A DNA stretch of 42,909 bases from Cyanophora paradoxa CCMP329 (GCA_004431415.1 QPMI01000211.1:1-42909), one strand, 5' to 3'; positions 14,437 to 42,909 are shown, numbered from the stretch's first letter. Translations and numbers: made by a program. The notes: generated from the sequence alone by a model not told the origin.

Positions 14437-14577
14437 ATGAACTGGAGGATAACGCTCAAATTTCTTGACACAAACTGTAGTAACAGTTTCTAGTGTCAAC
14501 AATTATATTTTTCGTTTTAACACCTCCACTCGCCTTCTGATTCTCGCAGGTTGTCGAGCGCGGGCTGAAACGTGGCC

Positions 14578-14663
14578 GGGGGTGGGGGTGGGGGGGGGGG
14601 GGGGGGGCGGGGGCGGGGCGGGCGGGGGGGGGGGGGGGGGGGGGCTTGGGGCGGGGGGAGGGG
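14578..14663 (+). repeat. Poly-G tract (G-quadruplex-prone)
   Basis: ~86 nt almost entirely G, followed by CCAAGAAC repeats and strand-skewed low-complexity DNA. Confidence 0.9.
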
Positions 14664-15116
14664 ACTTACACCCCAGCACCATCGTTCAAGACATCCACCA
14701 AGACATCCCCAGACACAAGAACCCAAGAACCCAAGAACCCAAGATACTTATTCTTCATACTTCATACTCATTCTTCTAGATACACACACATACTACTCTC
14801 CACTTTTCCAAGTACCAGTACCTTCTACTCTTCTACTCTCTTCTACTACACACCTACTCTTCCATCCAGTCCCAAGTACCCAAGTGCAAGACATATAGAC
14901 ATCCACCAAGCTTGGAGAGGGGGACGGGCTAAGTGGGCACTGGTGGAGGGGGAGGGGACTTCGTTTCCCCTGTTTTTCAGTTATTATTCTCTTTCAAGAA
15001 TTTGTTTCGCGCACCCTTTTTAGATTAAAACCCAAGATACTCATTCTTCATACTTCATACTCATTCTTAGACTTCCATTTACTCTTCCACACACACTCAA
15101 GGCCAACCAACCTCAT

Positions 15117-16076: not shown

Positions 16077-16090
16077 GTCCGGCTCGAGCT

Positions 16091-16181
16091 CAACCTCGAG
16101 CCTTTCCAAGCTGCTCATGGTTCGAGCCTTTCCAACCTCGAGCCTTACCAAGCTGCTCATGGTTCGAGCCTTTCCAAGCTG
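16091..16181. repeat. 42-bp tandem repeat, ~2.2 copies, built from a TCGAGCCTTTCCAA submotif
   Basis: CAACCTCGAG at 16091 and 16133; the submotif occurs four times. Confidence 0.9.
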
Positions 16182-16530
16182 TTTTTATAATTTCGTTAAA
16201 TGTGCTTCTCATTCGCAGAATGATTGCACCAATCCGTCAACTTCTGGAGAGTTCGCCAATGCGTTCAACAAAGTCCGCAGTTCCAGCCAGTGCCAACAAG
16301 CTCAAGGTTCGAGGTGCGGGACACATTCGTCTCTTCTTCGGGACCTGCCTTATCCTTTCCCAGATAAATATATATGCATTATAGCTAGATATACGCAGGA
16401 GGTATTCTGTGCGACAGCTTTTTCTAGTCAAACTTATTCAGCTACATGTGTGATGGAATTTAAACATTAAATCAAATAGCCACACGCCGCTGGGATGAAA
16501 AGAACGAGTGGGCCAGTTGGCAACGTTCGC

Positions 16531-16722
16531 TATTACACCGACCCCTATTACACCGACCCCTATTACACCGACCCCTATTACACCGACCCCTATTACACCG
16601 ACCCCTATTACACCGACCTGGTCGGAGTAATCGCCCGTGGGAAAACACCGACCTTGTCGGTGTACTAAAGGTCGGCGAAGCACTATTACTCAGTCGGCGT
16701 ACCAGCACATGATCTCCCAGTG
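16531..16722. repeat. Subterminal repeats and putative right terminus (CAGTG) of the En/Spm-like element
   Basis: TATTACACCGACCCC x6 (16531-16618), direct ACACCGACC at 16645, inverted copies at ~16620, 16656, 16670, 16692. Hairpins ATTAC-A-CCGACC-T-GGTCGG-A-GTAAT and ACACCGAC-CTT-GTCGGTGT. Confidence 0.75.
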
Positions 16723-21120: not shown

Positions 21121-21323
21121 AAGATCGTCCGTCTCACGACTAGGAAGGGCGGGAAGCGATAAGAACTACGAATAAAGAACTACGGCGGCTTGAAAAGCAT
21201 ACACAAGCGACCAAGGAGCGGGTGCTCCGGTCCGAATAGCTCAGAGGATCCTGGAAGGGGCCTACAAGGGAGGGGAGGAGGATGGGGCTGGGGCGGGCTG
21301 GGCGGGGGCGGGGGCGCGGGGGG

Positions 21324-23356
21324 TCAGACCCTGAGGATGGCGCGCTTGCCGGCGGTGACGCGCACGTCGCGGTCGCCCGCCTGGCGGGGGTTAGCTGCGG
21401 GCGCGGGGGGCGCGGCGCGGGCGGGGCGCACGACCGAGGCGACGCTGGGGGCCCGCGCCCCCGCGGGGTCACGTTCATCGCGTCCAGGGCCCCGGCGCTG
21501 AGGCCCCCCGACGCCCGCCCCGCAGCCCCCAGCCGGATCGAGCGCCGGTCCCCCGACGCCGACCCCGCCGCGAAGGAGCCCGAGCGCGTCTGCATGCGCA
21601 CGGGGACGCTCGCCGCGCTCCCCGCGTCGTCCTCGCCGACGAGCCGCAGCGCCCGCTTCTGCGCCGCGATCGCCAGCAGGTCGTTCGCGCTGGGGGCCCC
21701 GTCGTCGGCCCCGTCGGCGCAGGCGCAGCCGCAGGAGAAGAAGCGGAGCAGGGAGCGCCCGAGGCTCCGCGAGGGCGTCTCGTCGAGCGGGCGCCGCCGG
21801 TTCGGCGAGTACGCCTGCCGCTTCAGCTGCTCCCGCTCCACTGCGCCCGCCTCAGCGCGGCCGGCCGGCCGGCGGGCGGGCGCGGCGGGGCGGGGCGGGG
21901 CGGGCCGTGGGCGGCGAGGGTGGCGGCGTCCTCGAGCGCCTCCTCGTCCACTGCCGCCCCTCAGCGCCGCCCCGCCGGGGCCCGGGGGCGTGGCGCGGCG
22001 CACCCGAGACGGCCGACCACGCGCGGGCGTCGCCGCCGAGGGCCGCCCACAGGGCCGCCCGCGCGGCGGAGGGCGAGGCCTGGGGCGCCGGCTGCGGGGG
22101 CGTCAGCGGGGGGCGACGGGGCCTGGGGCGGGAGCGGGGCGGGGGCGGGGGCGGGGGCGGGGCGGGGGGGGGGGGGGTACGGGCCTCGGGGACGACCTCG
22201 AGGACCTCGGGGACGAAGGCGAGCTGCACGTGCAGCTTGCCCCGCATCTTCGTCGGGTCCTGCTGCAGCGACAGCCACAGGTCCGCCGTCTTCGCCTGCC
22301 CGCTCGCCAGCAGGCTCTCGAAGTCCACCGTCACGTACCCCAGCCGCTGCCGCGTGAACAGGTCGAACACCTGCCCCCGCCGCCGCCCCGCCCGTCACGC
22401 CACCGGCTTCGGAGGCGGGGGCGGGGCGCGGGGCGGGGCCGGGGCGGGCCTGGAGGAAGATGAGGGCGTTGGAGAGGTACCGCCTCCGCAGCTCCCGCAC
22501 GAACACTGCCCCCCCGTCAAGCGGGTCGGGGCGGGGCGGCGCGGGGCGGGGCGCACCCTGGTCGGACCAGCGCCACTCGCCGCTCGCGTAGACGGCGGGG
22601 CCCGTAAAGAACTCGCGCCCCGCGACTGCGCCGGCGGCGGGGTCGGGCGGGGGAGGCGGGTGGGGCGGGGCGGGGCGGGGCGGACGCTCGACGCAGACGA
22701 AGGGGACGAGGCGGGAGGCCTCCTCGCCCTTGGTGAGGCCCACGGCGGCGTGCACCCGCACGACCATCTGCGCCCGCTGCAGCCGCCGCCGCGTCCCCTG
22801 CGACCCCCCCCACGCGCTCTGCGCCTCCGACCCCTGCCCCCCCCGTCAGGCCCGCGAGGCGGGGCGGGGCGGGGCGGGCCGGGCGGCGCACGTTGGACTG
22901 GAAGGAGCGGACGCTCATCATGGAGTTGCGCCCGTCGCCGCCGCGCATTTGCGAGTCGCGGCCGTTGGCGCCGCGCGAGAAAGAGGTGCGCCCGTTGGCG
23001 GAGACGAAGCTGTCGCGGCCGCCGGCGCTCTTCTCCGACATAAGGCTCTCGCGCGCGTCCGGGAAGAGTTCGTCGCCGCTGCGGTTGATTGCCCGCGTCT
23101 GCGCCGGCATCTTCCCCTTGCTGCTGGTGCCGAACGAGCGCCGGCTCTCCCCAGGCGAGTTCTGTTCGGTCGTCGGCCGCGTCCTCAGCGGCGCCTTTGG
23201 TGCGCCGTTCGACATCGCCCCGTTCGTCCCGTTCGTCCCGTTCGTCCCGTTCGTGTGGCCCGGCTCGTCCTTGTCGCTGGCCGCCGCCGGGCTCAACCCG
23301 ACACCCGCGCCAGCGTTCGCGTTGTTCACAGCGCTCATTATGGCGTTGGCTAGCAT
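21324..23356 (-). CDS. C2-domain protein (multi-exon)
   Basis: Spliced product MLANAIMSAV..MVVRVHAAVGLTKGEEASRLVPFVCVELAGREFFTGPAVYASGEWRWSDQ..IFLQVFDLFTRQRLGYVTVDFESLL..DLWLSLQ..RGKLHVQLAF has the C2 beta-sandwich pattern. 3' end is approximate (needs a frame change in a G/C run). Confidence 0.75.
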
Positions 23357-23832: not shown

Positions 23833-26800
23833 ATGGAGGATGATGGCACGAGGAGGCGGAGGGCCGCAGCGCGCTGCCCGCGTATCCGCGTGGGCCTCGC
23901 CCGCGTCGTGCTCCCAATCTTCATCCTCCTGCTTATCTCATCGATCGTGGTGAGCCGTGAGCGTCGAGCGCTTCGAATTGCTCTGGCCATGGCCACCGGC
24001 GCTGCAGCGCGCATGCATCTCCGCTGTGCGATTCGAATGCTGCGCTCCGGTGCCCCTGAGCGCTTTCTCAGATGATCACAGTCATTTCCTCGACGTACGC
24101 AAATCGCACGGCTTCTCGCCTTAGCCGCTTCTATTTGGAACAAGTCGGCCACAGAATCGAAGCGGTCCGCACTAGTACTCGCTCGCGGCGCGCTAGCGCG
24201 CGTACGCGTGGAGCGCTCCTGCGGCCGCGGCTGCGCGCGGCTGGCGACGCGCCGCGCGCAGCGGTACCAGGACTTACAGAACGCGACGGAGCGGGCGACG
24301 GCGTCGCTGGGGGCGCGCATCCTGCGGTCGACGGGCGGCCGCGCGATGAGCTCCGCCGACTTCGGCGCCATCGCGAATCTCGCGCTCGACGCCTTCAGCG
24401 AGGGCGCCGGCCACCACTTCAACCTCTTCGGGGCCCGCCGCCGCCCGCGCTCGTGCTCCGCCCGCCTCGAGCTCGCCGGCGCACTGATCACGGCGACGGC
24501 GCGCGCGTTGGGCAGATGACGCTGCCGAACCGGGAGCAGCTGCTGCTGCGGCGGGAGAGCCCCGAGGCCTTCCTCGCCCAGTGGCCCCGCGCCGCCTACC
24601 CCGTCTCCATGCTCTCCTGGCGCATAAACGCGAGCCTGCCCGACTCCGCCCCGGGCCGCCCCGCCGTGCGCCGCGCCGCCCCACGCGCCGCGCCCCCCCG
24701 CCCGCCCCCAGCCGGCGCGTGCGCTGCATCTTCTCCCCCAGGTGGACCGCTTCACGTCGTACCTGGACCGGGAGACGGGCCGCTGGGTCGTCTTCGAGCG
24801 CGCCCCCAACGTCCCCGTCGACTTCAGGCGCCCCCGCCCCCTGCCGCGCGCTCCCTCGGCGGGGCGCGCCTGAGGCGGGTGACGCCAGGCTGCGCCCGTA
24901 CGTCGTCTCCGCAAAGGAAACGAAGGCCCCGGTGCGCATGCGCCGGGGCGCGCCCCCGCACGCCACTGGGCCCCCGTCCTCACCCGAGGCCCCGGCCCGC
25001 CCGCAGCTCTGGTCTCCCGCCTTCCCGGTACTAGATGCCATTCCCGCCCTTTCTCCTCCGCCCTCGCCCCCCTCTGAGCCAAGTGCAGTTCAACGCGAGC
25101 ATCCTGGGGGCGGCGCAGGTGCCTGTGCCCTGCCCTCGCCGGCGGGGCTGCGAGCGGGGCGGGGGCAGTTCGTGCACGTGGCGCCGCTGTACACGGGGGC
25201 GCCCTGGACGGCCCCCGACCTCCCCGGCGCCCTCGGGGAGACCCTGCCCCCGGAGATCCCGCCCTACGCGCCGCCCCCGGGCAGCGTCTACCGCGGCGCC
25301 GTGCGCCCCGCGAGGGCCCCCGCCGCAATCCGATCTCCGGGAGCGAGCGGGGCGCAGATCGCGCTGACGCTGCAGGGCCTGCGCCAGTACGTGACGAACG
25401 TCAAGGTCGCCGAGAGCGGTGCGCCGCCCCGGCCCGCCCGCCTCCCCGCGGCGGCCGCCGGGGCGAGGGAGGGAGGGCGGGGCAGGGTTCGCGGCGCTGG
25501 TGGCGAACGACATCGCGAGCGGGGCGCCGCGGGCGGTGGCGTACAAGCGGGCGGGGGCGATCGTGCGGCCGGTCCCGGCGGACCCCGTGGCGGGGACGAA
25601 CCTCGCCTTCGTGGAGACTGAGCAGCTCGCCGACCCCGAGCTCAAGGCCCGCCCCGCCCCGCCCCGCCACCCGCCCCCGAGCCCCGGGCGACGGGGGGCG
25701 GGGCGGGGCAGGCGTTCATGGAGGCGATGCCGCAGCGCCTCAGCGAGCTGCCCCTCCCGCCCCCCGCCGAGGCCGGCCTCCAGTTCGAGCCCTCCGAGGG
25801 GCCCGCCGCCCCCTTCATGCAGGCCCGCCCCGCCCCACTCCGCCCCGCCCCGCGCGTCTTCCGCGTGCGGCGGCGAGGGGGGCGCAGGAGATGGAGTTCA
25901 AGGTCGGGGGCCGGGAGTACGTCGGGCGCTGGCGCAAGCTCGCGGGGCAGCCCGGCGGGGCCCCAAACGCGACCATGCAGGCGCGCCCCCCTGCCCGCGA
26001 CCGCTGCAATTTCCCGCGATCCACGGCGACGCGGCGCGCGCGCAGCTCGTCCTCGGGGTCGCCGCCCCCAAGTCCGGTGCGGGCGGCTCCTCGCGGCCTC
26101 TGCGAGGGGGGCGGGGCCGAGGAGGGGCGGGCAGAGATCGAGGGCGACGTGGCGCGGCTGGAGGCGGCGACCATCGCCATCTCTGCGGCCTGCGGCGGCC
26201 TAGCCCTCCTCCTCGGCGCCGCCACCGTCCTCGAGGCGACCTCTCCTCCCGCCCCCGCGCCGGGGCCGGGGCCGCTGACGGTGGGACAGGTGCGGCGGGC
26301 GATGGGCCGGCTGCGAGGCGAGCTCGACGCGATGGCCTTCTTCAGGCGCCGCCCCGCCCCCAGGGCCTCCGGGCGGCCGCCGCCCGTCGCTCTCACCCTC
26401 ACCGCCCCGCAGCCTCGATCCCGACGCCCCGGGGCCGCCCCCTGTCGCCCCCGCCGCCACCCCGCCGGCCCCGCCCTCGGGCCTCGCCGGCTTCTTCGCC
26501 CGCCGCGGCAGCGTCGGCCGCCGCCGCCGCGCCTCGCACGCCGACCCCGAGGCCCCCGCCGGCCCCGCCCTCGCCCCGGGCGGCCCGCTGCTCTCGCAGG
26601 CGCCGCACGGGGCGGGGCGGGGCCGGCTGCGCTCCCCCATCTCGGAGCTCGACGAGGTGCGCGGCGGCGCGCCCCGCCCGCGCGGGCCGGGGCGAGGGGG
26701 AAGCTCGCAGGTGGGCGAGGCGCTGGCGAAGATGCAGCAGGCCGTCCAGGTGCCCGCGCCGGCGCCCGCAACCCCCCGCCCCGCCCCGCCCCCGACCGCC

Positions 26801-29800
26801 ACGCGCCAGCTCACGAGCACCATCTCGGACGCCCTCCTCGTCGTCGACGCCCGCGGTGGCAGCAGCACCCTCCCAGCCCTCCGCTCCCCCGCCCGCGCAC
26901 CTGACGGGGCGGCAGGGGCCGTGGTGCACTCCAACGCGGCCGCCCGCGCCCTCTTCTTTGCCGGTGCGCCCTGCCGCGCACCCGGCCTCGCGGGGGCGAC
27001 GGGGTGAAGGGCGGGGCGGCAGGGGGCGGGGGCGCTGGCCTCGCGGGGCCCGCCCGCATGCCCGTCATGTCCCTCGTCGCCCCCGCCGACCGCCCCGCCC
27101 TCGCCGGTCCCCCGGCCCCCGCCCCCGCCCCCGCCCCTCCAAACGCCCCCCGCAGGCTTCCTCGCGGCGGAGCAGGCGCCCGGGGCGACGATCGAGTGCT
27201 CGGCCCTCGCCTTGGGCGACCCCGTCCCCGGGGCCCCGGAGGGCGGCGCGGGGCGGGCCTTCCCCGTGGAGCTCAGCGTCGGGCGCATGGAGCTGCGCGA
27301 CCAGACCCTCCAGGTGCCCCCGCGCCTCCCCTCCCCTGCGCCCCGCCAGCGCCCCCCACGCCTCTCCCGCAGGTGCTGGTCGTCCGGGACGGTGCGCAGG
27401 GGCGGCGCAGGGGTGCTGCGGCGGGCGCGGCTGAGGGGACGGGGCAGTGTCGGAGCGGAAGGCGATGGAGGGGGCGCTGCAGCGCAGCGAGGCCGCCGCC
27501 CGCGTCACCTCCGAGGTGCCCCCGCGCCCCCGCGCCTCGCCCGAGCGCTCACGGCGGGGGCCGGCAGGACCTGCGCCGCATCATCGACACCGGTGCCGCG
27601 CTGCCTCCGCCCGCCTCGCGAGGGCGAGGCGAGCGGGGGCGGCCGGGGCGCAGCGAACGCGCCCATCTTCAACGTGGACCCCGCGCTGCGCGTCACCGCC
27701 TGGAACCGCGCCGCGGCACGAGTCACCGGCATCCAGCCCGTCCGCTCCCGACCAATCGCCCGCTGGCCGCCGGCGGGGCGTCGCGGGGGCGATGCGGGGC
27801 GGGGCGGGGGGCAGGGGCGATCGTGGGGCGGAACCTGCTGGAGCTGGTGGCGGAGCGGGACCGCGTCGGCGCCCAGCTCCTCTTCGCCCGCGTCCGCCCC
27901 GCAGCCGCCCCCGCCCGGCCCTGCGCCGGGCGAGGGTCGGCGGCAGGCGCTGGAGGGGGCGGGGGAGGAGGGGAGGGGAGGGGGAGCCCGTCGAGCTCGG
28001 CTTCGCCGTCCCGGCCGCCGCCGCAAGAGGCCCGCCCCGCCCCGCCTGCGCCTCCGGGGCCGAGGCCGGGGCGACGGGGCGGCAGCGGGAGCAACGCGAG
28101 CTCGAGCGGCGGCTCGCAGCCCCTCTCCTCGCTCGCCTCGTCGGCCCTCTCGCAGGGCGCCCGCCGCCTCGTCCGCCTCCTCGTCAGCGCCACCGCCAGG
28201 CCCGCCCCGCCCGCCCACCCCGCCCACCCCGCCCCGCCGCCGGCCCGAGCGCGCGGGCGCAGGCGGGACGCGCACGGGCGCGTCGTGGGCGCCGTCGCCG
28301 TCGGCCAGGCCCGCCCGCGAGCCGCCCCCGCCAGGGGCGTGCGCTGGGGTCTGAGGCGGGCGCTGTGGGGATCCGCGGGGCGCAGGACATGACGGAGCAG
28401 CGGGCGCGGATCGAGGCGGAGGCAATCAACGAGACGCGCAACCGCTTCCTCGTGCGCTCTGCTCGGCCCCTCGCCCGCTGCGCCCCCGCGGGAGCGCCGG
28501 GGCGCAGGCGTACACCGTCCACGAGCTCCGCACGCCCCTCAACGGTGCGCGGCGTAGCGGCGCGGCCTGGCACGGCGACGGCGATGGGCGGGGCAGGGGT
28601 GCTGGGCATGGGCGAGCTGCTGGGGGAGACGCGGCTGGACGGGGAGCAGCGGGAGCTTGCCCACGCCATCCGCATCTCCGCCGAGCAGGTGCCCCCGCCC
28701 CGCCCCGGCCCCGCATCCGCGTGCCCGCCCACGCGCCCCCGCCCGTGCCCAGATGCTCGTCATCGTCAACGAGTGCGCTCGGGCCCGTCCTCGCGCCTCC
28801 TCGCGGGAGCGGACGCCCTGGCCCTCTCAAACCTCTCTTCGCCCCGGGCCCCGCCGCAGCCTTCTCGACGTGCGCCCCGCGCAACCCCCCTCTCCTCGCC
28901 CCTCCCCCGCTCACCCAGCCCCGCGCCGTGCACGCGCAGCTGCACAAGATCGAGGTCCGGGGGGCGGCGCGGGGCGGGCCCGGCCGGGGCCCCCTTCGAC
29001 CTGGGTTCGGGCAGGCGGGGCGGATCGTGCTGGAGGCGATCCCCTTCGACCTCCGCGCTGTCGTCGAGGACACCGTCGAGGCCCGCCGCCCCCGCTCCCC
29101 CGCCCTGCCGGCATCGAGCCGCGCGGGCCGGGGCGCAGGCCGTCGCCCCCGCGGCCTTCGAGAAGGGCGTCGAGATCGCCGCGTACCTCCCCTGCGAGGG
29201 CGCTGCAGCCGGCCCCGGCGAGGCCGCCATCCCCATCCCCGCCCGCCTCCTCGGCGACCCCTGCCGCGTCAAGCAGGCCCGCCCCGCGAGCTCTCCCGCG
29301 CGCCGCCTGGCCGCGCCGACGGGCTGGGCGGGCAGATCATCACGAACCTCGCCTTCAACGGGGTGAAGTTCACGCAGCGCGGCCACGTGCTCGTGCGGGT
29401 GGCCGCCGTCCGCGCCCTCCCCGCCGCCATCCTCCTCCGCATCGAGGCCCGCCCCCGCCCCCGCGCGCGCCCCCGGGGCGGCAGCTGAGGGGGCGGCAGG
29501 TCGAGGACACGGGCCTCGGCATCGACGAGTGCGCCCCGGGCCCCCGCCCCCGCCGCTGCCCGCCCCGACCCCGTCCCCCTCTCCGCGCGCGCAGGAGCGG
29601 CCTCGAGCGGATCTTCCAGGAGTGCGCGCCGGGACCGCAGTCCCTCCCCGCCCCCGCGGGCGGCCAGGCTGACGCGGGGGCGGCAGCTACGTGCAGGCCG
29701 ACCAGTCCATCACCCGGTGCGCCCCCTGTCGCCCCGGCGGGGGCAGGCACGGCGGCTAAGCGCGCTCGGCGGGGGCAGGCTCTACGGGGGGACGGGCATG

Positions 29801-32309
29801 GGCGAGCCCTTCGCCGTCCCCGCTTCGCGCCGGGCCTCGGGGGCGTGACGGCGTGTGAGCGTGACGGCAGGGCTGGCGGTGTCGAAGCGGCTGGCGGAGC
29901 TGATGGGGGGCCGCATCGGGGTCTCCTCGAGGCCGGGGGAGGGCAGCCTCTTCTTTGTCGAGCTCCGCCTCGGCACCCTCCCCGAGCCCGCCCCCGAGGC
30001 CCGCCCCGCCCCCCGCGCCCCGCGCCCCGCCCCCCGCCCCTCACCCCGCCCGCCCCGCCAGGAGCAAGAGCAGGAGGAGGCGGAGGAGGAGGCGGTGGGG
30101 GGCGTGCTGGGCGGGGAGGGCCGGCAGGCGGGGCCGGCAGCCGAGCCCGAGCGGGCCGAGCTCGCCACCGACCGCGAGGCCTCTGAGGGCGCGCGCCCGC
30201 CAGGCGCCCCCCGGCCACCCTCGCCCACCCGCCGGCGCAGAGGAGGCGGTCGAGGAGGAGGCGGGCGGGGCCGCCGGCCTCATCCCGAACCTCCCCTCCC
30301 TCGCCCTCGTCGAGAACGAGGCGCCTCCCCCCCCGCCCCGCCCCCGCGCAAGCGGCCCCCGACCCGCGGCGGGACGGGGCGGTGCGGGGGCAGATGCTCT
30401 CGCACACGACGACGCCGCCGCCGCCGCGGGTGCTGGCGCGCCCGGGGCCCCCTTCGTGGCCCTCCACGTGGCCCACCCCGACCCCGCCATCGCCGCCATC
30501 GTCTGCTCCGCCCCGCCCCGCCCCGCCCCGCCTCCAATGCGCCGAGGGGCGTGGCGGCAGGTGCGCGCCTACGCCGTGGAGGTCGGCTGGCCGCCCGCCC
30601 TCGTCGACCCCGCCAGGCGAGGCCCCCGCCCCGCGCCGGCGGCGGCGGCCCCGGCCGGGGGCTCACGGGCGGGGCAGGGAGGGCGCGGGGACGGCGGGGG
30701 CGGTGGTGGTGGCGGACGCATCGGTGAGCCCCGAGGCGCTCGCGTGCCCACGGGGCCCCCTCGCCCTCGTCTGGCTCGCCGCCCGCGGCCGCCCCGCGCG
30801 CCGCGGCTCCGTTCGCCGCGGGAGCGAGGCCTCTGCGGGGGACCGCTCCGCCCGCTCCTCCGTCTCCTGCGCCAGGTCCCCGCCCCTCTGCCCCCTCCCC
30901 GGCGCCTGGGGCCCACGGTGGGGCAGTGGGGAGGGGCCGGCGGGGGCGGGGCCCCCGTGGCGCAGCTGCGGGTGACGAAGCCCGTGCGCCCGCACCGCCT
31001 CGCCGCCGCCCTCCAGGTGCCCCCGCCTCCCCGCGCCCGCCCCGGGCCCCCAGCCGCCTCGTGTGATCGCCCCCGCCGCCCCCAGCGCGCCCTGGAGTCC
31101 GTCTGGGCGCCGCCCCCGCCGCCTTCCTCTCCGGGCCACGGCCGCCCCCGCGCCCTCTCCCTGCGCGGCCTCGCTGGCGCCCTCTCCCCTTTGACCTTGG
31201 GCCTCCCGCCCGGCTCCCCGCCCCGGGCCGGCACTCCCGTGGCGGCCGCCCCGGGGACCCGGCGGCCGTCGCCCGTGCCGGAGCTGAGCCCGCGGACGCG
31301 GCCGCCGACGGCGCACCAGCAGGCCTCCCCAGAGCCCCCGAGAGCCCCGCAGAGGCGGCGCCAGCGGCGCCGGCCCCGGCGACGCCCACGGCGGCCCCGG
31401 CAGCGCTGCCGCAGGCGGCGGGGCCGGCCGCCGGGGCCCCGCCTGCGGCCCCGGCGGCGATCCTGTGCGCCGGCGCCTCTCTCTGCGGCGCTGCGCGCGG
31501 GCTCGCTCTGAAGCGCGGGGCGGGCGGGCGCAGGGTGGTGGACGACGTGGACCTCAAGTGAGCGCCCCGCGCCCCCGGGCCGCGCGGCGGCGGGGCTGAC
31601 GGGGCGGGCTGGGCAGCCGGAAGGTGTGCGTGACGATGCTGCAGCGAGCCGGCCTCCGCTGCGACACCGCCAACCACGGCGGCGAGGTCTCCCGCCCCGC
31701 CCCTGCCACGGGGCGCCGGCTCGAGGGGGCGGGGCGGGGCAGGCGGTGGAGGCGGTGCGGGGCCGGGCGGCGCGGGGCGAGCCGCCCTACGCCCTCGTCT
31801 TCATGGACATGGAGGCCCGCCCGCCCGCCCCGCCCCGCGGCCCGGCCCGCCGCCGCCGCCGCGAGAGCTCGAGCTTTGCGAGCCGCCGCCGAGCGAGCGC
31901 AGATGCCGGTGCTCGACGGCGTCGCCGCCACGCGCGAGATCCGCCGCTTCGTGCGCCCCGGCCCCGGCCCCGCCACCGTCCCCCCGAGCCCTCATCCCGC
32001 GGGGGCCGCAGGAGGCCGAGGAGGGGGCGGGCGGGCCGCCCTCCGCCATCGTGGTGCGCCCCTCCGCGCCCCTCGCCGCTCGGGATCCTCCCCGGGGGAG
32101 CCTGAGGGGCGGGGCGGGAGGCGGTGACGGCGAACGCGCTGTCGACGGGGGCGAGCGCGGAGCGGTGCCGGGAGGCCGGCATGGACGACTTCCTCACCAA
32201 GCGCGGCCGCCCCGCCCCGCCCCCCGCCCGCCTCACGCCCCGCAGGCCCGTCCGCAAGGAGCAGCTCCTCGCCGCCGCCCGTCGCTACGCCCCCGCCGCC
32301 GCACCCTGA
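23833..32309 (+). CDS. Membrane hybrid histidine kinase: TM-dCache-TM-HAMP-like-PAS-PAS-HisKA-HATPase-pseudoREC-REC (~55 introns)
   Basis: Spliced motifs: DFRLRPYV..LWSPAF (dCache-like); ISDALLVVD..FPVELSV..VRDVSERK and ANAPIFNVD..WNRAA (PAS); AYTVHELRTPLNG (H box); VNDLLDLHKIEAG; GDPCRVKQIITNLAFNGVKFT (N box); VEDTGLGI; YGGTGMGLAVSKRLAELMGG; VVDD..VFMDMEMPVLDG..VTANA..GMDDFLTKP (REC). Confidence 0.93.
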
Positions 32310-32491
32310 TCCCCGCCCCCCGACCCGCCCCCCGGCCCGGCGGCCGCCCCGTCCCACTGGCGGCACCCCAGAACCCCCGCCTGCAATGCAGCCGCCTCTG
32401 TACAGTCTCCCCCGAAAACCCTCTCCATTTGGCGCGAGAGAGCCGAGACAGGCGCGGGGAGGGGCAGGCAGGAAAGGGGGAGGGGGCGGGG

Positions 32492-34030
32492 TCAGGGCTG
32501 GGGCGGGGGCCGGGGGCTGGCGAAGGGGTTGGGGAAGTCGCGGGCGGCGGGGAGGGCGGGGAGGAAGACGCGCTCCCAGGCCTGCCGCACGAACTCCTCG
32601 ACGGCGCGCTCGTGCCCCGAGAGGTCCAGGTGGCGCCGCAGGGCGGCCTCGGGGCCGCCCTCGCCCCAGCCCCCGCCCTCGAAGTAGTCCGCCAGCGCCA
32701 GCCCCGCCGCCCGCGCCAGGAAGCCGGCCGTGAGCGCCTGCAGGCCGCGCCCAGCAGGAGGCCGCCGCCGAGGGAGCCGGCGAGGCAGAGGGCGGCGGCG
32801 GCGGCGGCGAGGCCGCGGGCGGTGCCGGCGCCGTCGGCGTCGAGGCGGGCGAGGCCGGCGACGACGCTCTCCGCCAGCTCCTGCGCCCGCCCCGCCTCGA
32901 GCCGCTCCCCGTACGCCCCCGCCACCTCCTCCGCCATCTTCGCCGCCAGCAGCGCCCCGACGGCCGCCCCGGCCCCGCCACGGGGCTCACCGCCACGCCC
33001 CCGGCCACCCGCCACTGGTAGGCCTCGACGAGGGCGGTCGCGGCGCGGCGGCGGGCGGCGGCGAGGCGGGGCCGGGCGCTCCGGGCGGCGCGGAAGCACT
33101 GGTAGAGGGCGTTCTCGGCGAGGAGCTCGGGGCCCTCGGCGGCGGCGACCTGCGCGACGCGGGCCGCGAGCGCGCCGCCCTCGGCCGCCACCACGTCCAG
33201 CGCCGCGCACCGCACGCCCCGCAGCCCGTGCGCCTCCGACCGCAGCGCCTCCAGCCCCGCCTCCCTCCCGCCCCGCTCCCGGGAGGGCCACGAGGAGGCA
33301 GCGCTTGCCCAGGCCCCCGGCGAGGGCGCGCAGGGCGCGGGCGGCGGGCGGGGGGAGCGGGGCGGAGGCGCAGGGGAAGAGGACGAGGTCGGCGGCGGCG
33401 GCGGCCTCGCGGGCGGCGGCCTCGGCGGCGCGGTCGCCCCCGAGGCCGCCCGAGGCCGCCACGAGCAGCTCCCGCCGCACCCCCTGCCCCACCGTCAGCC
33501 CGCGCCGGCGGCGGCGGCAAGCGCGCCCCGCACCTCGAGCCGCAGCGGGCGCATCGCGTCGGGGGCGCCGGGGCCGGGGCCGGGGCCGAGGAGGGCGGCG
33601 GCGGCGGCGGCGGCGGCGGGGGCGCCGCCCTCGCCGAAGCAGACGATGCGGAGGGCGCCGGCCTCGAGGGCCGCCTCGGCGCGCTCGGCCGCCCGCAGCG
33701 CCGCCCGCGCCGCGTCGGCGTCCTCGCCCGCGGCCCCGCGAGGGCGGCCAGCGCCTCCCCGAGCTCCCGCAGCTCCCGCACCCCCGCCCGCGCCTCCTCC
33801 ACCGGCCCCGGCCCCCGCCCTGCCCCGCCCGCCTCCTCCTGCGTCCGCCCCTCCGCCTCCTCAGCGGCGGCCGCCTGCCGTGGCGCCCGCTCCTCCCGCG
33901 GCCGCTCCTCCCGTGCCCGGGGCGGCGGCGGCGCCGGGGCCTTCTTCGCCGCGGCGGCCGCCTCGCAGGGTGCGGCCTTGGTCTTCGCGGCCTTGGCGTG
34001 GGCGCGGCGGCGGAGGTGGGAGCGGACGAA

Positions 34031-34067
<37 letters not shown>

Positions 34068-34752
34068 AGGACGAGGAACTTCTGGATGGGGAGGACGGCG
34101 GCCGCCACGACGAGGCCCACCACGCCGCCCGCACCCACCGACGCCCACCGGAACCACCGCGTCACGTCCAGCAGGCCCGGCAGCGCCCCCAGCGGGCTCC
34201 ACGCCAGCGGCGGCTGCTTCCCGCCTCCCACCCCGGAGCCGCCGGCCTGCGCGTCTGCGCCCCGCTTCTCTCCCTCGGCTGCGCTGTAGCTATCGAGCTG
34301 CGACTGCAGCTTCCCGAAGATCGCAGTGGCCGCCGCCTGCGCCGCAGCGGTGATCTGTTCTGGAAGGCCCTCCACGCTGGGCGGCTTCTCGGGATCGCCC
34401 TCTTCATGCGAGCATCGAGCCGCTCTGGAAGTGCGTGTTCGAAGCGACGGGTCCTCGAGGGCGCCCAGTGCCTGCGTGTGCGATCAGAGACAGCTGCGTC
34501 TGGCTTGCGCGGCGTGGCGCGTACCCTGCGGGCGATCGAAGAGCACAGGAACGAGGATCTCTTCGCTTCGAACCGCGGCTGGTGCGCTCCTGTGCTCTGC
34601 GGGAGCGCCTGGAAGGCCAATTCCGATTCTTTCCGCGCTGCACGCGCCGGCCTCGCCGAAGTGGCCGGTGCATACCACCCAATCGCCAGAGGCCGCGTGC
34701 GCGCCCCGGGAGCGGCCGGAGGCGCGGCGAAAGCCGCGGCTTCTGCAGCCAT
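32492..34752 (-). CDS. YcjF/DUF697-family protein of cyanobacterial type, degenerate GTPase domain, probable plastid transit peptide
   Basis: N-terminus MAAEAAAFAAPP, Ala/Arg/Ser-rich for ~100 aa; two hydrophobic helices. C-terminal GPELLAENALYQ..LVEAYQW..AKMAEEVAGAYG..GRAQELAESV..LADYFEGGGWGEGG..EEFVRQA resembles cyanobacterial DUF697 GTP-binding proteins (recognised from memory). Confidence 0.72.
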
Positions 34753-34809
34753 CCGAAGTCCCCCACCGGGATTCGATCGGCAGTCTTTCGCCACCTCGGC
34801 GATCGTGAA

Positions 34810-37800
34810 ATGCGCGCTGAGCCCCGTAGCGTCGCCCAGCCTCAGCTAGGCGAACGCGCGCACCCGTTGCTGAGCCGCTCACGCCTAGCGCAGGGCTTCG
34901 AGGCTGTGCGTGAAGAACATCCCGAAGCACCTCAACGAGAAGCGCTTAAAAGAGCACTTCGAGACCAAGGGAGAGGTCACAGATGTCAAGATCATCCGAA
35001 CAAAGTGCGCCCCCGCACGATCGCAGAGCTCGAGCAGCGAGCGCGGAGCAGCGAGCGAGGGGCAGCGAGCGGGGAGCAGCGAGCGCGCGGGGGAGCTGCA
35101 GGTGCTGACTTGCGCTCGCAGAGACGGGCGCTCGCGGCAGATCGGGTTCGTGGGCTACCGCTCGGAGAAGGAGGCGAAGGCGGCGCGCCACTACTTCAAC
35201 GGGACGTACGTGGACACCTCGAAGATCAGCGTCGAGTTCGCCAAGGCGGTGCGCCGCCGCTCGCGGCTGCGGCGCGCGCCGGGGCCGCCGCGCGACGCCC
35301 CCGCAGGTTGGGGACCCGTCGCTGAGCCGCCCCTGGAGCAAGTACTCCCAGGGTAGCAGCGCCTACGAGAAGCGGCACCCGAGCGCGGACGGCGGGGCGG
35401 GCAAGAAGGACGGGCAGCAGGGCGAGAAGGGGAAGAAGGCGCCGCGGGGGGAGGACGCGGTGATGCAGCTGGCGCGGGAGGACCCGCGGTTCAAGGCGCG
35501 CGCCGCGGGGCGGGGCCGCGGCGCGTACGCGGCGGGGGCTGAGGGGCGCGCAGGAGTTCCTGGAGGTGATGGCGCCGCGGACGAAGGGCAAGGTGTGGGG
35601 CAACGACGAGGCGGCCCCCGTGGCGCCCGAGGCGGCCCCCGAGGCGGCGCCGCTGGAGGTGGCGGAGGTGCGGGTGCAGCGCGTGGCCTCGCGCAAGGCC
35701 GGCGGCGACGGCGTCTTCTACGAGCGCAAGCACTTCAAGGCCCGCCCCGCCCCGCCCCGCCCCGCGCCCCCGGCTGCCGCGCGCGACGGGGCGCGCGCGC
35801 AGTTCGAGGACGAGGGGAGCGAGGGGGGCGGGGCGAGCGACGACGAGTACGAGGCCCTCCCCGACGCCGCCCCGCCAGCGCCCCCAGCGGCGACGAGGCC
35901 GAGGAGGAGGCGGCGGCCGAGGAGGGGGCGGGTCGGAGGGGGCGGGGGCGGGGAGGACCACATGGCGTACCTGAAGCGCAAGGTCGTACCCCGCTTCGAC
36001 GAGGACGACGCGGCCGCCGCCAGCGGGCCGGAGAGCGCCCCCGCCGCCTCCACCGACGGCGAGGCCAGCGGCTCCGCGGCCGCCGGCGCCGGGAGCGGGG
36101 CCGAGGGGGCCGGCTCGGGAGCCGAGCCCGAGAAGAAGAAGAAGAAGAGCCGGGCGCAGCGGCGGCGGGAGGCGGCGGAGCGGCGGGCGGCGGCGGCGGC
36201 GGCGGCGGCGGAGGCGGGCGGGGCGGGCCCCGGGGAGGGTGCGGAGCCGGCGGACGCGGGGGAGACGGGCCGCCTCTTCGTGCGCAACCTCCACTACGGC
36301 GTCACCGAGGAGGACCTCCAGAAGCGCGCCCGCCGCGCACGCCCGCCCCCGCCCCCGCGCCGCGTCGAGCCGGGGCGGGGCGGGGCCCGCCGCGCCGCGC
36401 AGGGCCTTCTCCAAGTTCGGGCCCCTCTCGGAGGTGCACGTCGTCACCGACGCGGAGGCGAAGCGCGGCAAGGGCCTCGCGTGCGGCCCCCGCCCCCCGC
36501 CCCCGCCGGGCGAGGCCCCCGGCGAGGTGGGCGCAGGCACGTGCAGTTCATGTTCCCGGAGCACGCGGTGGCGGCGCTGCAGAAGATGGACGGGGTCATC
36601 TTCCAGGGCCGCCTCATGCACGTCCTCCCGGGGCGGCCCCAGCCGGCCCCCAAGGAGCAGCCGCCCGGGCGCGGCCTGGGGGGGACCTCGGCGTTCAAGC
36701 AGGAGCGCGCGGCGAAGCAGGCCTCGCTGCGGGACAGCGAGCACAACTGGGCCGCCATGTACATGCGGGTCCGCCCCGCCGGCCGGCCCCGCGTGGAGCG
36801 GATGGCGGCCTGAGGGGCGCAGGGGGACGCGGCGGTGGGGGCGATGGCGGGGGAGATGGGCGTCGACAAGGCCGCCATCCTCGACCCCACAGCCGACGCG
36901 TCCGCCGCCCCGGCCCCGCGCCCCGCCCCCGTGCCCTGCCCCTGAGCGGGGCGCCGCGGGGGCAGCTCGATGGCGGTGCGGGTGGCGCTGGCGGAGACGC
37001 ACGTGATCGCGGCGACGCGGGACGCGCTGGCCCGCGAGGGGATCAACGTCGAGGCCCTCTCCGCGACGGGCACCGGGGTGCGCAAGGAGCGGAGCCGCAC
37101 GGCGATGGTGGCGAAGAACCTCCCCGCGGGGACCACCGAGGCCGACATCCGCGCCCTCTTCGGCAAGTTCGGGGCCCTCGCGCGCGTCGCGGTGCCCCCC
37201 GCGGGGGCCCTCGCGGTGGTGGAGTTCGTGGAGCGCGGGGAGGCGAAGCGGGCCTTCCGCGCCCTCGCCTACAAGCAGTTCAAGCAGGCGCCCCTCTACC
37301 TCGAGTGGGCCCCCGTCGGCCTCATCGCCGGGCCCGCACCCGCCCCCGCAGGCCCGCCCACCCCCCGCCCTCGCCTCCCCCGCCCCGCCGACGCGGCGCG
37401 CAGGGGCGGCGGAGGCGGCGCTGGAAGCGGGGGCGGAGGGGGAGGGGGAGGGAGACGGGGCGGGTGCGGGGCCCGGGGGCGCGCTGTTCGTGAAGAACCT
37501 GAACTTCGAGACGACGGAGGAGACGCTGCGGCGGGTCTTCGAGCGCGCCGGGCCCCTCCGCTCCTGCACCATCGCCCGCAAGCGCGACCCCCGCAAGGCA
37601 CCGCCCCCGCCCCGCCCGCCCCCGCCCCGCCCGCCCCGTGCGGGGCGTGACGGCGCGCAGGGGGCGGCGGCGGGGGCGACGCTGTCGCAGGGGTACGGCT
37701 TCGTGGAGTTCGCGCGGGCGGGGGACGCGGCGCGGGCGCTGAAGGAGCTCCAGGGCGTCCGCGTCGACGACCACGCCCTCGTCCTCAAGGCGCCCCGCCC

Positions 37801-38483
37801 CCTCCCCCTCCCGCCCCTGACCGCCCCCTCCCGCCCCTGACCGCCCCGGGCAGATCTCCCACCGCAAGAAGGAGGGAGCGGGGGCAGAGGCGGGCCCCTC
37901 GTCCCGCGGGGCGGCCGCGGCGGGGCCCGGCGCTCAGAAGGCGCCGAGCACCAAGGTCCTGGTGCGCGCGGGCGGGGCGGGGCGGGGCAGTGCGGGGCGG
38001 GGGGAGGTGGTGGGGGGAGGGGGCGGGGCCGAGTGTGGCGGGGCGCAGCTGCGGAACCTGGCGTTCGAGGCGACGAAGAAGGAGGTGCGGGAGCTCTTCC
38101 GCCCCTTCGGGGAGGTCCGCAGCGTGCGGCTGCCGAAGAAGTTCGACGGGACGCACCGCGGCTTCGCCTTCGTCGAGTTCGTCTCGCGCACGGAGGCCGC
38201 CAAGGCCGTCGAGGCCCTCAAGAACTCCCACCTCTACGGCCGCCACCTCGTCCTCGAGTTCGCCAAGGCCCGCACCCCCCGCCCCGCCCCGCTGCCCCCC
38301 GCACCCGCCCCGCCCGCCCCTGACGCCCCGCAGGAGGACGACAGCGTCGAGGCGCTGCGGGCGGCGACGGCGAAGCACTTTGCGGGGGCGAGCGCCGGCC
38401 GCGCCGCGAAGCGCCGGAAGATCGACGAGGAGGCCGGCAGCGGCGAGGACGAGGAGATGGAGGACACGATCTTGGCCGCCTGA
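34810..38483 (+). CDS. RBM19: Multiple-RRM 40S ribosome biogenesis factor RBM19/Mrd1
   Basis: MASRLCVKNIPK..GFVGYRSE..RPWSKYS; ETGRLFVRNL..FQGRLMHVLP; SSMAVRVALAETHVI; AKRAFRALAYKQFKQAPLYLEWAP; LFVKNLNFET; LRNLAFEATKKEVRELF..HRGFAFVEF..HLYGRHLVLEFAK. Five RRMs, ~14 introns. Confidence 0.95.
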
Positions 38484-38516
38484 CCCCCGCAGCCCCGCAG
38501 CGTAGTTTTGGCAGCG

Positions 38517-39963
38517 CTAGCGACAGTGAAACAGTGAACAGGGAGAAAGGAGGCGAGGGGGAGGGGGGAAGGAGGGCGGGGCGGGTGCGGGGGGGTGGTG
38601 GGAGGCTTGGGGAGGAGGCGGGCAAGGGAGGTGGAGGGAGCGCGGGGCAAGGCTCCAGCTGAGGCTGGAGGGTGGTGCAACGGTGTGGGGCGGCTGGAGT
38701 GGGCGGCCCGCGGCGGCGCGAGGGTGGCCCGCCGAGCAAGGCGGGAGGGGGGCGGGCGGGAAGGGCGAGGGCCCGGGGGCGGGGCTACCGGACGGGCGGG
38801 GGGCGGCGGAGGTGCGAGAGCGGATGCGCTCGGCCGCCTGCTGCGCGCGCCGCCGCTCCTCCGCCCGCCGCCGCGCCGCCGCCAGCCGCGCGAAGAGCCT
38901 GCGCGGCGGTGGGCGCGGGGCCGGAGGGGCCGGCGGGGCTGGGCGGGGCAGGGCGGGCACCCGCCAAGGAGGAAGCCGGCGGCGAGGCCTCCCGCGTGGC
39001 CCGCAGCGTCCTGCGCGCAGCGTCGGCCCGCACCGCGCCCCCGCCCCGGCGGCCCGCGCCCGCACGATGGAGCCGCAGCCGAAGGGCGCCCGCCCCCGCC
39101 CCGCATGAGGGGATACACGACGCTCATGTAGACCTGCTGGAGCATCGTCCTGCGCCGGCTCGCCCGCTCAGGGGCGGGGCGCGGCGGGGGGGCGGGGGGG
39201 AGGGCGGGGGGGCGGGCCAGACGAAGAAGGGGTCGTCCTCCTCGAGGGCGGACTCGCCGGAGCCGCCGCGCGCCCACGCCTGCGCCACCAGCGCCCCTGC
39301 CGCCCCCTCAGGATCCGGCCCCCGGGACACGCGGGGCCGGCCGGCGCGCCGATGAGGCCGAGGATGGAGCCCGAGGCGCCCACGCCGAGGTGCCGGTTCG
39401 CCGCCGCCGACGCCAGCGCGCACGCCGCCCTGCCGCCCGTACGCATCGGCCGGCCGGCGCGCCGGGCAGGCGGGCGGGCGGCGGCGGGGCGCACCCGAGA
39501 GGCCGTAGATGAGGGCGAAGCGGAGGTGCCCGAAGGCGCGCTCCGCCTGTGCGCGCGCCCGCCCGCCTCAGCTGAGCGCCCGCCGCGCGGCGCGGCGTGC
39601 GCGAAGGCGGCGCACGATGGGCCCGAGGCGGTAGAGGGAGACGGTGTTGGAGAGGACGTGCGGAAGGCCGCTGTGGAGGAAGGCGGAGGTGACGAGGCGC
39701 CACCACTCGCCGGCGGCGAGCCCCTCGTTCGACTTGCAGTACTTCAGCACGAACGCCATGCGCGCGCCCTCCGGCAGAGCCTCCTGGTACGCGAAGAGGC
39801 CCACGTTGGCGAGGAGTAGGCCGCCCGTGAGAAAGGGCCGGCGGCGGAAATCTCGGTACACGCCGCTCGCCCAGTGCGCGAGGGCGCTCCGGCCCGGCGG
39901 TGGCGACGGCGGTCGCGCCGAGCGCGGCGGCGTGCCCGCCGGCGCCCGCCCGAGCACCGGCAT
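38517..39963 (-). CDS. Rhomboid intramembrane serine protease (catalytic residues present)
   Basis: GEWWRLVTSAFLHSGLPHVLSN, GVGASGSILGLIG (catalytic Ser) and DAAGHAGGLAAG (catalytic His). 3' end uncertain; probable single-base G-run errors. Confidence 0.88.
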
Positions 39964-40237
39964 CGCGAAGACGCGCGTCCGCCTCGCGCGTTGGCTTAGC
40001 GCTCCCTGACAGCTGCAGCGCTAGCTATGACCCCTTTGAACAACGCGACGTCGACGGAATTCGAAGTGGCGCACCCGTGACCGCTAAGCGCTGCACGTGC
40101 ACCCCTACCCCTCTGAAGACGCTCTACCCCGCTTGCAGTGCCCTCTCTTTCGCGCTCCCCTCTCTAGAGCGCTCTACAGTTCTGTACATAGCATTACACG
40201 CGGCGGGGCTGCCGCCGGGGCTGGCCGGGGATCGGGG

Positions 40238-42909
40238 TCAGGCGAGGGCCGGCTGCGGCTGCGGCTGGGTCTCGGCCTCGTCGGATGGGTCGTCGGGGAT
40301 GCCGAGCAGCTCCTCGCGCCTGCGCTGCCGGGGCCGGCCGCGGGGCCGGCCGCGGGGGGCGCCGGGCGGGGCGGGGGCGCCGCGGCGCTCGGCGACGAGG
40401 GCGTCGAGCTGGGGATGGAGCAGCGGGCGGGGATGAGGAGGGCACGCCCGTCGCGGGCGACGGCGGCCTCGTCGAGGACGCAGGTGGACTCGCCGGGCAG
40501 GTCCGGCGCGTCGTGCATCGCGTCCAGCAGCAGCCGCTCCATGATCGTCCGCAGCCCGCGCGCCCCCGTGCCCCGCGCCAGCGCCTGCCGCGCCACCGCC
40601 CGCACCCCGCAGTTCGTCACGTGCAGCTCGCACTGCGCCCCCGTCGGTCCCGCGCGGCGCGGCGCAGGCGCGGGCGGGCGGGCGGGCGGGGCGCGGACGT
40701 TGCTCATGGCGAGCTGGCGGCGGTACTGCTTGACGAGGGCGTTGCGGGGCTTGGTGAGGACCTGCCGCGCGGCCGGTCAGCGCGGAGCGGGGGCGGGGCG
40801 GGGCGGGGCCGGGGAGGGGGGGGGCCTCGATGAGCTGCTCCTCGGACAAGGCGTGGAGGATGACCATCACGGGGAGGCGCCCGATCTGCGGCCGGCGCTC
40901 CGTCGGGGGCAGGGGCGGGGCGCGGCGGGGCGCGGCGGGGCGGACGAATTCAGGGATGAAGCCGAACTTGACGAGGTCCTCCGCGTCCGCCTGCTCCAGG
41001 ATCGCCGGGTCCGGCGCCCCGCCCCGCACCGGCGCCCCGAACCCGATGCTCTGCCCCGCCCCTTTCGCCTCGCGGGCGTGGCGGGGGCGGGGGCGGGGGC
41101 GGGCGGACGGTGGCGGCGCAGCGGGCGGCGACGATCTTGTCGAGAGACGTGAAGGCGCCCCCGACGATCTGCGCCCCGCCCCTCAGCCCCGCGCCCCCCG
41201 CCCGCTGCCGCGCGGGGCCCGCGGGGCCGACGAAGAGGATGTTGCGGGTGTCGACGGGGATGGTCTCGCCGCGGGGGTTCTTGCGGCCGCCCTTGTCGGG
41301 GACGTTGACGACCGTCCCCTCGAGCATCTTCAGCAGCGCCTGCTGCACCCCCTCCCCGCTCACGTCCCGCGTGATTGACACGCTCTCCGACTTGCGCTGC
41401 GCGCCCCCGTCACCACCCGCCCCGCGGGGGCCCCGCAGGGCGCGCGGGCGGGGCGGGGCGGGGCGGACGGCGATCTTGTCGATCTCGTCGATGTAGACAA
41501 TGCCGAGCTGGGCGAGCTCGACGCTGCCGCCGGCCTCCTGCAGCAGCTTGTACAGCACCGACTCGACGTCCTCCCCCACGTAGCCCTGCCCCCGCTCAGG
41601 CGCGGGGCGCAGGGCCCGCCGGCGGCGCGGCGCACCGCCTGCGTGAGGCTCGTCGCGTCGGCGATCACCAGCGGCACGTTCAGCTGCGCCCCGCCACACG
41701 CCCCGTCAGCGCCGGCGGGGCGGCGCCGGGGGGCCGGGCGGCCGGGCGGGGGGGCGCCTTGGCGGCGAGGGTCTTGGCGAGGAGGGTCTTCCCCGAGCCC
41801 GTGGGCCCGACCAGGAGGATGTTGCTCTTCTCGATCTCCACGTCCTCCTCCCCGCCCCGCGGCGGGCGCGCCCGGCCCTCCCCCTCCGGCCGCAGGTGCC
41901 CCTCCAGCGTGCCCCGCGCCGGGAGCGCCGGGGCGACGTGCGGGGCCGCCCCGTACTGGAAGGCGTCCGTGGCGGGGGCGAGGAAGGGTGGTAGGGGTCG
42001 CCCCGTCCGGTGCCCGCTGCTCGTCCACCCCGCCCTGCGCCCCGCCCCGCCTCGCCCCGGCCCGCCGCCCCTGCGCACCGCGCCGCGCACCCCGGGCGGC
42101 CCCGAGGGGCTGGCTGGCGTCCCCGTGGGCGTGGAGCTCGGCGGGGGCGTGGGCCCCCTCGAGGCCCGCCCCGCCCCGCCCCGCGCCCGCTCCTCGGCGT
42201 GCCCTGCGCCGGCCCCGCGGCCTCGGGCGGGGCGGGCGGGGCGGGAGGGCGGGCGGACGGCGGAGGCGGGCGCGGTGCTCGAGGGCGCGGGCGTTGCGGA
42301 TGCGGAGGTAGTGGTTGTAGACGGCGACGGCGAGGGCGCGCTTGGCCGCCTCCTGGCCCACCACGAAGTCGTCCAGGTGCGCCCCGATCTCCGACGGCCG
42401 CGGCACCGCCCGCCGCATCACCTCCTCCACGATCTGCGCACCCGTCGGCCCTCGCCCCGCCCACCTCCCCCGGAAGGAGCGCACCGCGCCGGCCTCGAGC
42501 TGCGCGGCGCTGGGGAGGCCGGCGCGGGGGTCGAGGGGGAGGCCGGAGCTGCTGGGGGGCGGCGGGGCGCCGAGCGAGCTCGCGCTCGGGCCCGGGCCCA
42601 CGCCGATGGAGGTCCCCCGCGAGGGCGCCTTCGGCCACGCCGGCCCCAGCCGCTGCCCCTGCGCGTTCTCCTGCGCACCCTCAGCCCCCGCCCCCCCCCC
42701 CCCCCCCCCCTGCAGTTACCGTTCCAATGTACCACGCCACCACGCAGCTCTGCCGCCGCCGCCAGCATGCATGAGGCGCGGGGCGTGTGTGGCGCGCAGC
42801 CGCAACCGCGTGCCCACCTTACAGAACAAGGTCGACTTCTGGGCCGTCACGCGCGCCTCAAGAGAACCTCTGCAGCTCGGGCACGTAATGCGCACAAGCT
42901 CATCCTCTT
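40238..42909 (-). CDS. CLPX: ClpX AAA+ unfoldase (probably mitochondrial), 5' end outside the window
   Basis: [96 protein letters not shown] loop, [11 protein letters not shown]. Confidence 0.96.

Follow-up and report, generated by a model that had tools for sequence, protein, structure and literature searches.

Among the algae in which GC-AG introns are known to be abundant, GC donors account for 56–61% of donors in Emiliania huxleyi (PMC4028052), for 25.6% in Micromonas pusilla CCMP1545 (PMC4815162) and for 14–40% in Aureococcus (PMC3033335; bioRxiv 10.1101/2024.10.30.620910). The 5΄ end of U1 is canonical in Micromonas and Aureococcus despite their abundant GC donors, and the origin of abundant GC-AG introns has been termed an enigma (PMC3033335). 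Comparisons that span red algae, green algae and plants use Cyanophora paradoxa as the reference glaucophyte. The genome of this species has 67.6% GC and 9.2 introns per gene, with introns of 86 bp on average, and its published genes were predicted with BRAKER1/Augustus (PMC6704402). A literature search that included the genome paper and its supplements, with most subscription papers outside its scope, returned no statement on GC donors or splice signals in Cyanophora.

Genes and composition of the analyzed window

We analyzed a window of 42,909 nucleotides, the source of which is C. paradoxa: in a profile search, the kinase exon at 25488–25646 was 100% identical to the 1222-aa EukProt EP00741 protein tig00000893_g5345.t1. 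The right half of the window has 75–85% GC and densely packed short introns; the introns of the modeled genes have 87% GC, and the third codon positions of the RBM19 gene 97%. As in the algae rich in GC-AG introns, GC content is thus very high (genes 75–85%; genome 67.6%, PMC6704402).

Five intron-containing genes were modeled. A hybrid histidine kinase (tig00000893_g5345; 23833–32310, plus strand) and an RBM19/Mrd1 gene (34810–38483, plus strand) are followed on the minus strand by a rhomboid gene (38820–39963; frame-inferred introns) and a ClpX core (40238–42034), and upstream lies a candidate C2-domain-like gene recognized by eye (21323–23356, minus strand; frame-inferred introns), for which Pfam gave no C2 confirmation. 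Between the kinase and RBM19 genes, the minus strand carries a gene almost without introns (32492–34752), for which Pfam scans in two frames found no clear family. Little space separates the genes: RBM19 and rhomboid converge to within ~300 nt of each other (38483–38551), and the RNA contigs of ClpX and rhomboid end ~70 nt apart (40171–40100). Positions 1–16722 form an AT-rich element (~45% GC) with intron-containing genes, tandem repeats, a subterminal 15-nt array (16521–16625) and conventional-looking introns. A direct repeat of 217 nt (17550–17766 and 19428–19644; 97% identical, with ~1.7 kb between the copies) looks, from its sequence, like a small LTR-type element.

As judged from RNA contigs, the assembly lacks single bases in G/C runs at 35869, 39092 and 40410, and further single-base deletions probably lie near 27815, 30394, 30927, 31340–31400 and 39429. 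The rhomboid gene switches frame at the 39092 deletion, and the ClpX gene at the one at 40410. The base missing at 35869 is not needed to keep the RBM19 frame open, which implies a compensating difference.

GC-AG introns are frequent in five genes

GC donors were found in 36 of the 94 introns of the five genes in this one window (38%, 95% CI 29–48%), compared with an expectation of 2% (P = 3e-36). In a high-confidence set of 34 introns, whose junctions are independently fixed by RNA or homology, 12 had GC donors (95% CI 21–52%, P = 1.5e-12). By gene, the fractions were as follows: kinase (21/58), RBM19 (8/14), ClpX (2/8), rhomboid (2/6) and the upstream gene (3/8). The original prediction had named GC-AG introns a major class, which these counts and the five RNA joints described below bear out; it had given about 19 of ~57 for the kinase and, identically to the present parse, 8 of 14 for RBM19. 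The eight donor positions that it quoted all begin AG|GCCCGC.

Read contigs provided direct evidence. Their joints were examined over positions 34880–40870, with the best 15 listed. The spliced contigs belong to runs X1, X2 and X4 from two studies; their RNA status is presumed, yet they skip introns, unlike the contigs of X8. For five of their joints (36323>36403, 37595>37659, 37787>37852, 38265>38332 and 40760>40825), all equivalent placements were enumerated, and GC-AG on the coding strand was the sole reading with a standard terminus. In other words, segments with GC and AG ends are removed from these mRNAs, as in U2-type GC-AG introns. Use of a nearby GT donor, the outcome named beforehand as speaking against the prediction, was seen at none of the five RNA joints. 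Among the joints listed, two GT-AG joints were seen directly in RNA contigs, and two more were length-compatible. Unspliced DNA contigs of X8 span the GC donors at 35496, 37352 and 38268 without substitutions, so that base-call error is excluded at these donors. Frequent GC-AG introns in these five genes are accordingly confirmed.

GC-AG introns of the individual genes

The kinase comprises two hydrophobic TM-like segments, PAS-like repeats, HisKA, HATPase_c and a receiver domain, and is predicted to be membrane-bound; its 58 introns separate exons with a median of 71 nt and a minimum of 10 nt. The best matches of its N-terminal region are C. paradoxa g17321 and g21056, and the weaker ones are bacterial repeats. 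Its parse was made automatically and then corrected by hand, and its introns rest on homology and on the published model. For the homology test, in-frame donors within 45 nt, of any dinucleotide, were ranked with a profile built from 71 bacterial kinases. In the kinase core, all 13 junctions ranked first, including those with the GC donors 29081, 29277, 29447 and 29802. For example, intron 29081–29138 ranked first of 132 donor/acceptor choices, 29277–29335, directly before the N box, first of 95, 29447–29499, directly before the G1 box, first of 81, and 29802–29870, inside the G2 box with the donor GG|GCGAGC, first of 80. In the receiver domain, intron 32201–32245 (TKP motif, donor AA|GCGCGG) ranked first of 95, and the best GT alternative to intron 31815–31902 was worse by 19 bits.

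The published kinase model has the same junctions for nine GC introns of the present parse, among them 25647–25711 and 25823–25887. Mis-annotation had been foreseen for such introns, and of the 15 GC introns that the model spans, it indeed reads through 5, compared with 4 of the 29 GT introns, a difference that is not significant (P = 0.24). It misses the GC intron at 29802 and stops within it, so that the ATPase domain is cut short at its end and the receiver region is missing. If about a third of donors are GC, the gene models of C. paradoxa need GC-aware re-annotation. Three of the GC introns that the published model reads through (26236, 26552 and 28200) are in frame and could be coding, which would lower the kinase GC count by up to three. 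Four frame breaks adjoin G/C runs outside the conserved cores of the kinase; since RNA contigs show bases missing in G/C runs, these breaks are probably assembly errors, and they make the donors 27740 and 30321 uncertain.

The RBM19 model forms one open frame of 902 aa with 40–43% identity to Mrd1/RBM19 relatives. RNA contigs confirmed four of its GC-AG introns: 36324–36402 (AA|GCGCGC), 37598–37660 (AG|GCACCG), 37790–37853 (AG|GCGCCC) and 38268–38333 (AG|GCCCGC), the last with its donor also confirmed by DNA. Upstream of the donor of intron 37790, in-frame GTs stand at –9, –27 and –33, and no use of them was seen in the RNA contigs. Introns 35496–35553 and 37352–37403 are frame-inferred with donors confirmed by DNA, the RNA contig stopping 4 nt before the latter donor, and 35740–35802 is placed by frame. 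The first intron, 34812–34893, was placed from the reading frame and the N-terminal RRM and seems to divide the start codon as AT|G; a split start codon with a GC donor (34810–34896) is easily mis-annotated. As the RBM19 homology profile covers the C-terminal part only, the donor ranks of introns 1–5 are uninformative, and no relative was recovered from metagenomes scanned with an RBM19 exon. In ClpX, on the minus strand, intron 40762–40825 is RNA-confirmed and intron 41684–41757 ranked first of 90 by homology.

Splice signals shared by GC and GT donors

The two donor types share +4C (85/94), +5G (72/94) and +6C (80/94), all above local background; +4C and +6C exceed a local C background of 63% with P = 1.5e-9 and 2e-6. 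At +3, GT donors mainly have G and GC donors more often C, and the donor consensus G(T/C)(G/C)CGC put forward earlier is supported in the form GY(G/C)CGC. On the exon side of GC donors, –2A occurs in 30 of 36 and –1G in 33 of 36, in line with the greater reliance on exonic sequence that had been suggested.

In canonical snRNAs, U1 begins AUACUUACCUG and U6 has ACAGAGA. GC and GT donors alike reach about 12 of 26 possible H-bonds with canonical U1. A near-perfect U1 match at the other donor positions was not found: 35 of the 36 GC donors match at 3–5 of 9 positions, with 11.8 versus 24 H-bonds. The canonical U1 match also separates real from decoy GT donors poorly (AUC 0.62). The description of AG|GCCCGC as weak therefore stands against canonical U1; in its context the donor is specific, all 14 sense-strand occurrences in the modeled genes being used, a count with some circularity wherever the parse lacks an independent anchor. 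GTGCGC is used as a donor in 27 of its 36 occurrences in these genes.

At the 3΄ end, the acceptor is GCAG (–3 C in 99%, –4 G in 89%) and agrees with YAG; intron 32054–32120 has the only GAG acceptor among the 94, the rest being CAG, and this may be real or reflect a missing base. Across the 94 introns, positions –30 to –9 consist of 43% G, 42% C and 7% T, and no polypyrimidine tract was found. Such a tract is not universal in U2 introns. A branch-like motif centered on TGA or TAA, mostly CTGAC or CTGAG, lies 10–32 nt upstream in 40 of the 94 introns, compared with 5 in shuffles. The 5΄ half is rich in C: in 78 of the 94 introns its C skew exceeds that of the 3΄ half. Intron length has a median of 61.5 nt with a narrow spread.

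Two other kinds of intron were considered. U12-type introns, marked by an RTATCCT 5΄ motif and a CCTTAAC branch point, are not supported, as such a donor occurs in 0 of the 94 hexamers. Introns defined by hairpins are not supported either: with a mean z of –0.55, folding is slightly stronger than in shuffles, there is no obligatory stem, and the RNA-confirmed GC introns 37790, 38268 and 40825 have positive folding z.

In the AT-rich element, genes with T-rich introns (9194–14391, plus strand) have 23 GT donors and one GC donor (10609, AG|GCAAGT). This proportion (1/24) differs from the 36/94 of the host genes (P = 0.001), although the element introns are predicted and hand-picked and this choice favors GT, so that the contrast, drawn from sequence, is suggestive only. 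The element donors are without the CGC motif, their +4 position being A in 5, C in 8, G in 1 and T in 10; +4A is thus scarce in the host genes (5/94) compared with the element (5/24).

A trade-off among exonic AG, +2T and +5G

The original prediction placed these donors usually after exonic AG. This holds for GC donors (27/36) and fails for GT donors (10/58; P = 3e-8), and the 34 high-confidence introns show the same difference (9/12 versus 3/22, P = 6e-4). Among GT donors, +5G occurs in 2 of the 10 with exonic AG and in 43 of the 48 without it (P = 2.5e-5), and all nine GC donors without exonic AG have +5G. Counted per intron, two of the three elements (exonic AG, +2T and +5G) are present in 69 introns, one in 23, three in 2 and none in 0 (n = 94). 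The expected numbers were 17.5 for all three and 5.1 for none, and the depletion of introns with all three is also seen in the 34-intron set (1 versus 6.4 expected). These statistics, like the GC junctions and the donor and acceptor profiles, are established here.

Possible explanations of the GC donors

The reading that we favor, with a probability of roughly 0.6, is that these are ordinary U2-type introns in which GC pressure has eroded +2T to C at sites where pairing on the exon side makes up for it. The host introns would then be of the major-spliceosome type in an extremely GC-biased genome, and the 5΄ splice site would be read by three partly interchangeable contacts, about two of which are enough: pairing of exonic –2A/–1G with U1 and U5 loop 1, of +2U with U1, and of +5G with U1 and the U6 ACAGA box. 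An exon ending in AG would free +2T to become C, so that about a third of introns would have GC donors. Because the elements would be redundant, the surplus one would be lost, and in introns of 87% GC +2T would decay to C. In both donor types, +4C and +6C would stand in for the usual A/U, and the 3΄ end would be recognized as a GCAG that lacks a pyrimidine tract and is preceded, in fewer than half of the introns, by a CTGA(C/G) branch-like motif. We infer the T-to-C direction, the driving force (mutation bias or GC-biased conversion), the snRNA assigned to each contact and the canonical state of the snRNAs.

The trade-off described above is as expected under this reading, and it agrees with the published opposition of U5 and U6 pairing between 5΄ splice-site classes (PMC9803359, PMC11732430) and with exonic compensation at human GC donors (PMC3167603). 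Since +4C, +5G, +6C, the acceptor and the branch motif are common to GC and GT donors, one machinery appears to serve both. We also count in favor of eroded +2T that the AT-rich element has 23 GT donors out of 24 and a lone GC donor of the textbook strong type, and that high GC-AG levels are reported mainly for very GC-rich algae, two of which have a canonical U1 5΄ end (PMC3033335). Against it we count the poor canonical U1 pairing with its AUC of 0.62, and the enrichment of +4C and +6C beyond composition; canonical U1 and U6 do not pair with these bases. Two further points count against it: the hand-picked element introns favor GT, and their splicing by the host is only presumed; and genome GC predicts the GC-AG share weakly, as Micromonas RCC299 has 64% GC and 2.7% GC-AG introns (PMC3033335).

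A second reading, which we regard as doubtful but which can coexist with the eroded +2T, is that the snRNAs are canonical and that changes in proteins or modifications (METTL16/U6 m6A, SNRNP27K, U1C, LUC7) relax the checks on +2 and +4. The near absence of +4A in the host genes, set against the element, would fit, and absence of METTL16 or SNRNP27K has been associated with a vanished preference for +4A and a greater use of pairing on the exon side (PMC11732430); for Aureococcus and Micromonas, Iwata and Gotoh put forward modifications or U1 proteins (PMC3033335). However, published METTL16 loss favors +4U rather than the +4C seen here.

It is unlikely, in our estimate, that the spliceosome itself was respecified by an altered U1 5΄ end, an altered U6 ACAGA box or both, pairing with GY(G/C)CGC; variant U1/U6 snRNAs were one possibility named in the original prediction. 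The 5΄ splice-site code would in that case have been rewritten through compensatory changes in U1 and/or U6, the donors would be strong here, and the 3΄ site would be found without a pyrimidine tract; if true, an early-branching relative of plants would possess a major spliceosome that was respecified in nature. The observations that weigh against eroded +2T, namely the poor canonical U1 match and +4C and +6C above background, are those this reading would account for, together with the consistent use of AG|GCCCGC (14/14) and GTGCGC (27/36). Changed snRNAs were raised as a possibility for the GTGCGTG donors of Ostreococcus (PMC2483917), and Larue and Roy found only U11 of the minor snRNAs in C. 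paradoxa and suggested a transformed minor machinery (PMC10639083). On the other hand, AG|GTGCGT and AG|GYGCGT donors occur in Micromonas (PMC3879977), whose U1 5΄ end is canonical (PMC3033335), and the introns of the AT-rich element are without the CGC motif. Because abundant GC donors coexist with a canonical U1 5΄ end in Micromonas and Aureococcus, and because 23 of the 24 element donors are GT, respecified U1/U6 appears less likely than eroded +2T. An Rfam scan of the window returned no match, to snRNAs or to any other family.

We consider it very unlikely that the GC donors were spread by introner (transposon-like) families, as for IE-A1 of Micromonas pusilla. Intron density is high and lengths are narrow, the best-hit similarity among introns slightly exceeds that in shuffles (41 versus 35), and junction repeats are longer at GC introns, although the AG|G context accounts for these. 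However, the top pairs share only low-complexity CCCCG runs, the junction repeats vary from 0 to 7 nt without a fixed length, and no family or further multi-copy similarity was found among the 94 introns of this one window, nor was a terminal repeat or fixed target duplication apparent in their comparison; introner origin is not supported on this ground. The GC donors here are thus not tied to an obvious introner family.

Finally, that the GC donors conceal a GT (a T lost by assembly error, a nearby GT in use, or +2C edited to U) is scarcely credible, and the first two forms are refuted at the confirmed junctions: the single-base deletions in G/C runs at 35869, 39092 and 40410 and the three in-frame kinase introns that the published model reads through could suggest an artefact, but GC donors are fixed by RNA at five joints and matched by independent DNA contigs at three donors, and donor-agnostic homology ranking places GC first or far above any GT. 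Editing is the one form that spliced contigs would not reveal, and nothing here points to it.

Comparison with known systems

The locus resembles Emiliania in that GC donors are a major class, the AG acceptor is retained, the genome is GC-rich and GT-only prediction damages gene models. Emiliania differs in being a haptophyte with a higher GC fraction and some GA donors, of which none were seen here, and the part of its report available mentions no trade-off of the two-of-three kind found in Cyanophora (PMC4028052). Micromonas pusilla CCMP1545 shares the AG|GYGCGT-type donor with +4C/+5G and the CTGAC branch point (PMC3879977); the Cyanophora donors are unlike it in having +6 C and often +3 C. 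In M. pusilla, 79% of the GC donors belong to the introner family D-IE1 (PMC4815162), whereas no repeat family was seen in the Cyanophora window. In Aureococcus anophagefferens and Pelagomonas, GC-AG introns are likewise abundant (14–40%), which has been put down to high GC, and are low in the lower-GC Aureoumbra; these stramenopiles are intron-poor and have longer introns, whereas Cyanophora has 9.2 introns per gene (PMC6704402) and its kinase 58.

As in the GC-AG U2 introns of humans and plants, a stronger exonic match offsets the GC donor (PMC3167603, PMC3033335). There, however, such introns are about 1% of the total and have a stronger intronic consensus, whereas here the intronic U1 match is confined to +1 and +5. 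The trade-off also recalls the U5-strong and U6-strong classes of 5΄ splice sites, in which exonic AG anticorrelates with +5G (PMC9803359, PMC11732430); unlike these classes, Cyanophora adds +2T as a third traded position and has C at +4.

By these analogies, abundant GC-AG introns are of a known kind, and precedent does not require a variant U1; the original prediction had overlooked these published cases. Within the literature searched, the species, the lack of an evident introner link, the donor shifted to CGC/CCC and the explicit trade-off appear to be new. Since C. paradoxa is a cultured, intron-rich species, its trade-off rule and the internal contrast with the AT-rich element make drift with compensation testable against a changed spliceosome.
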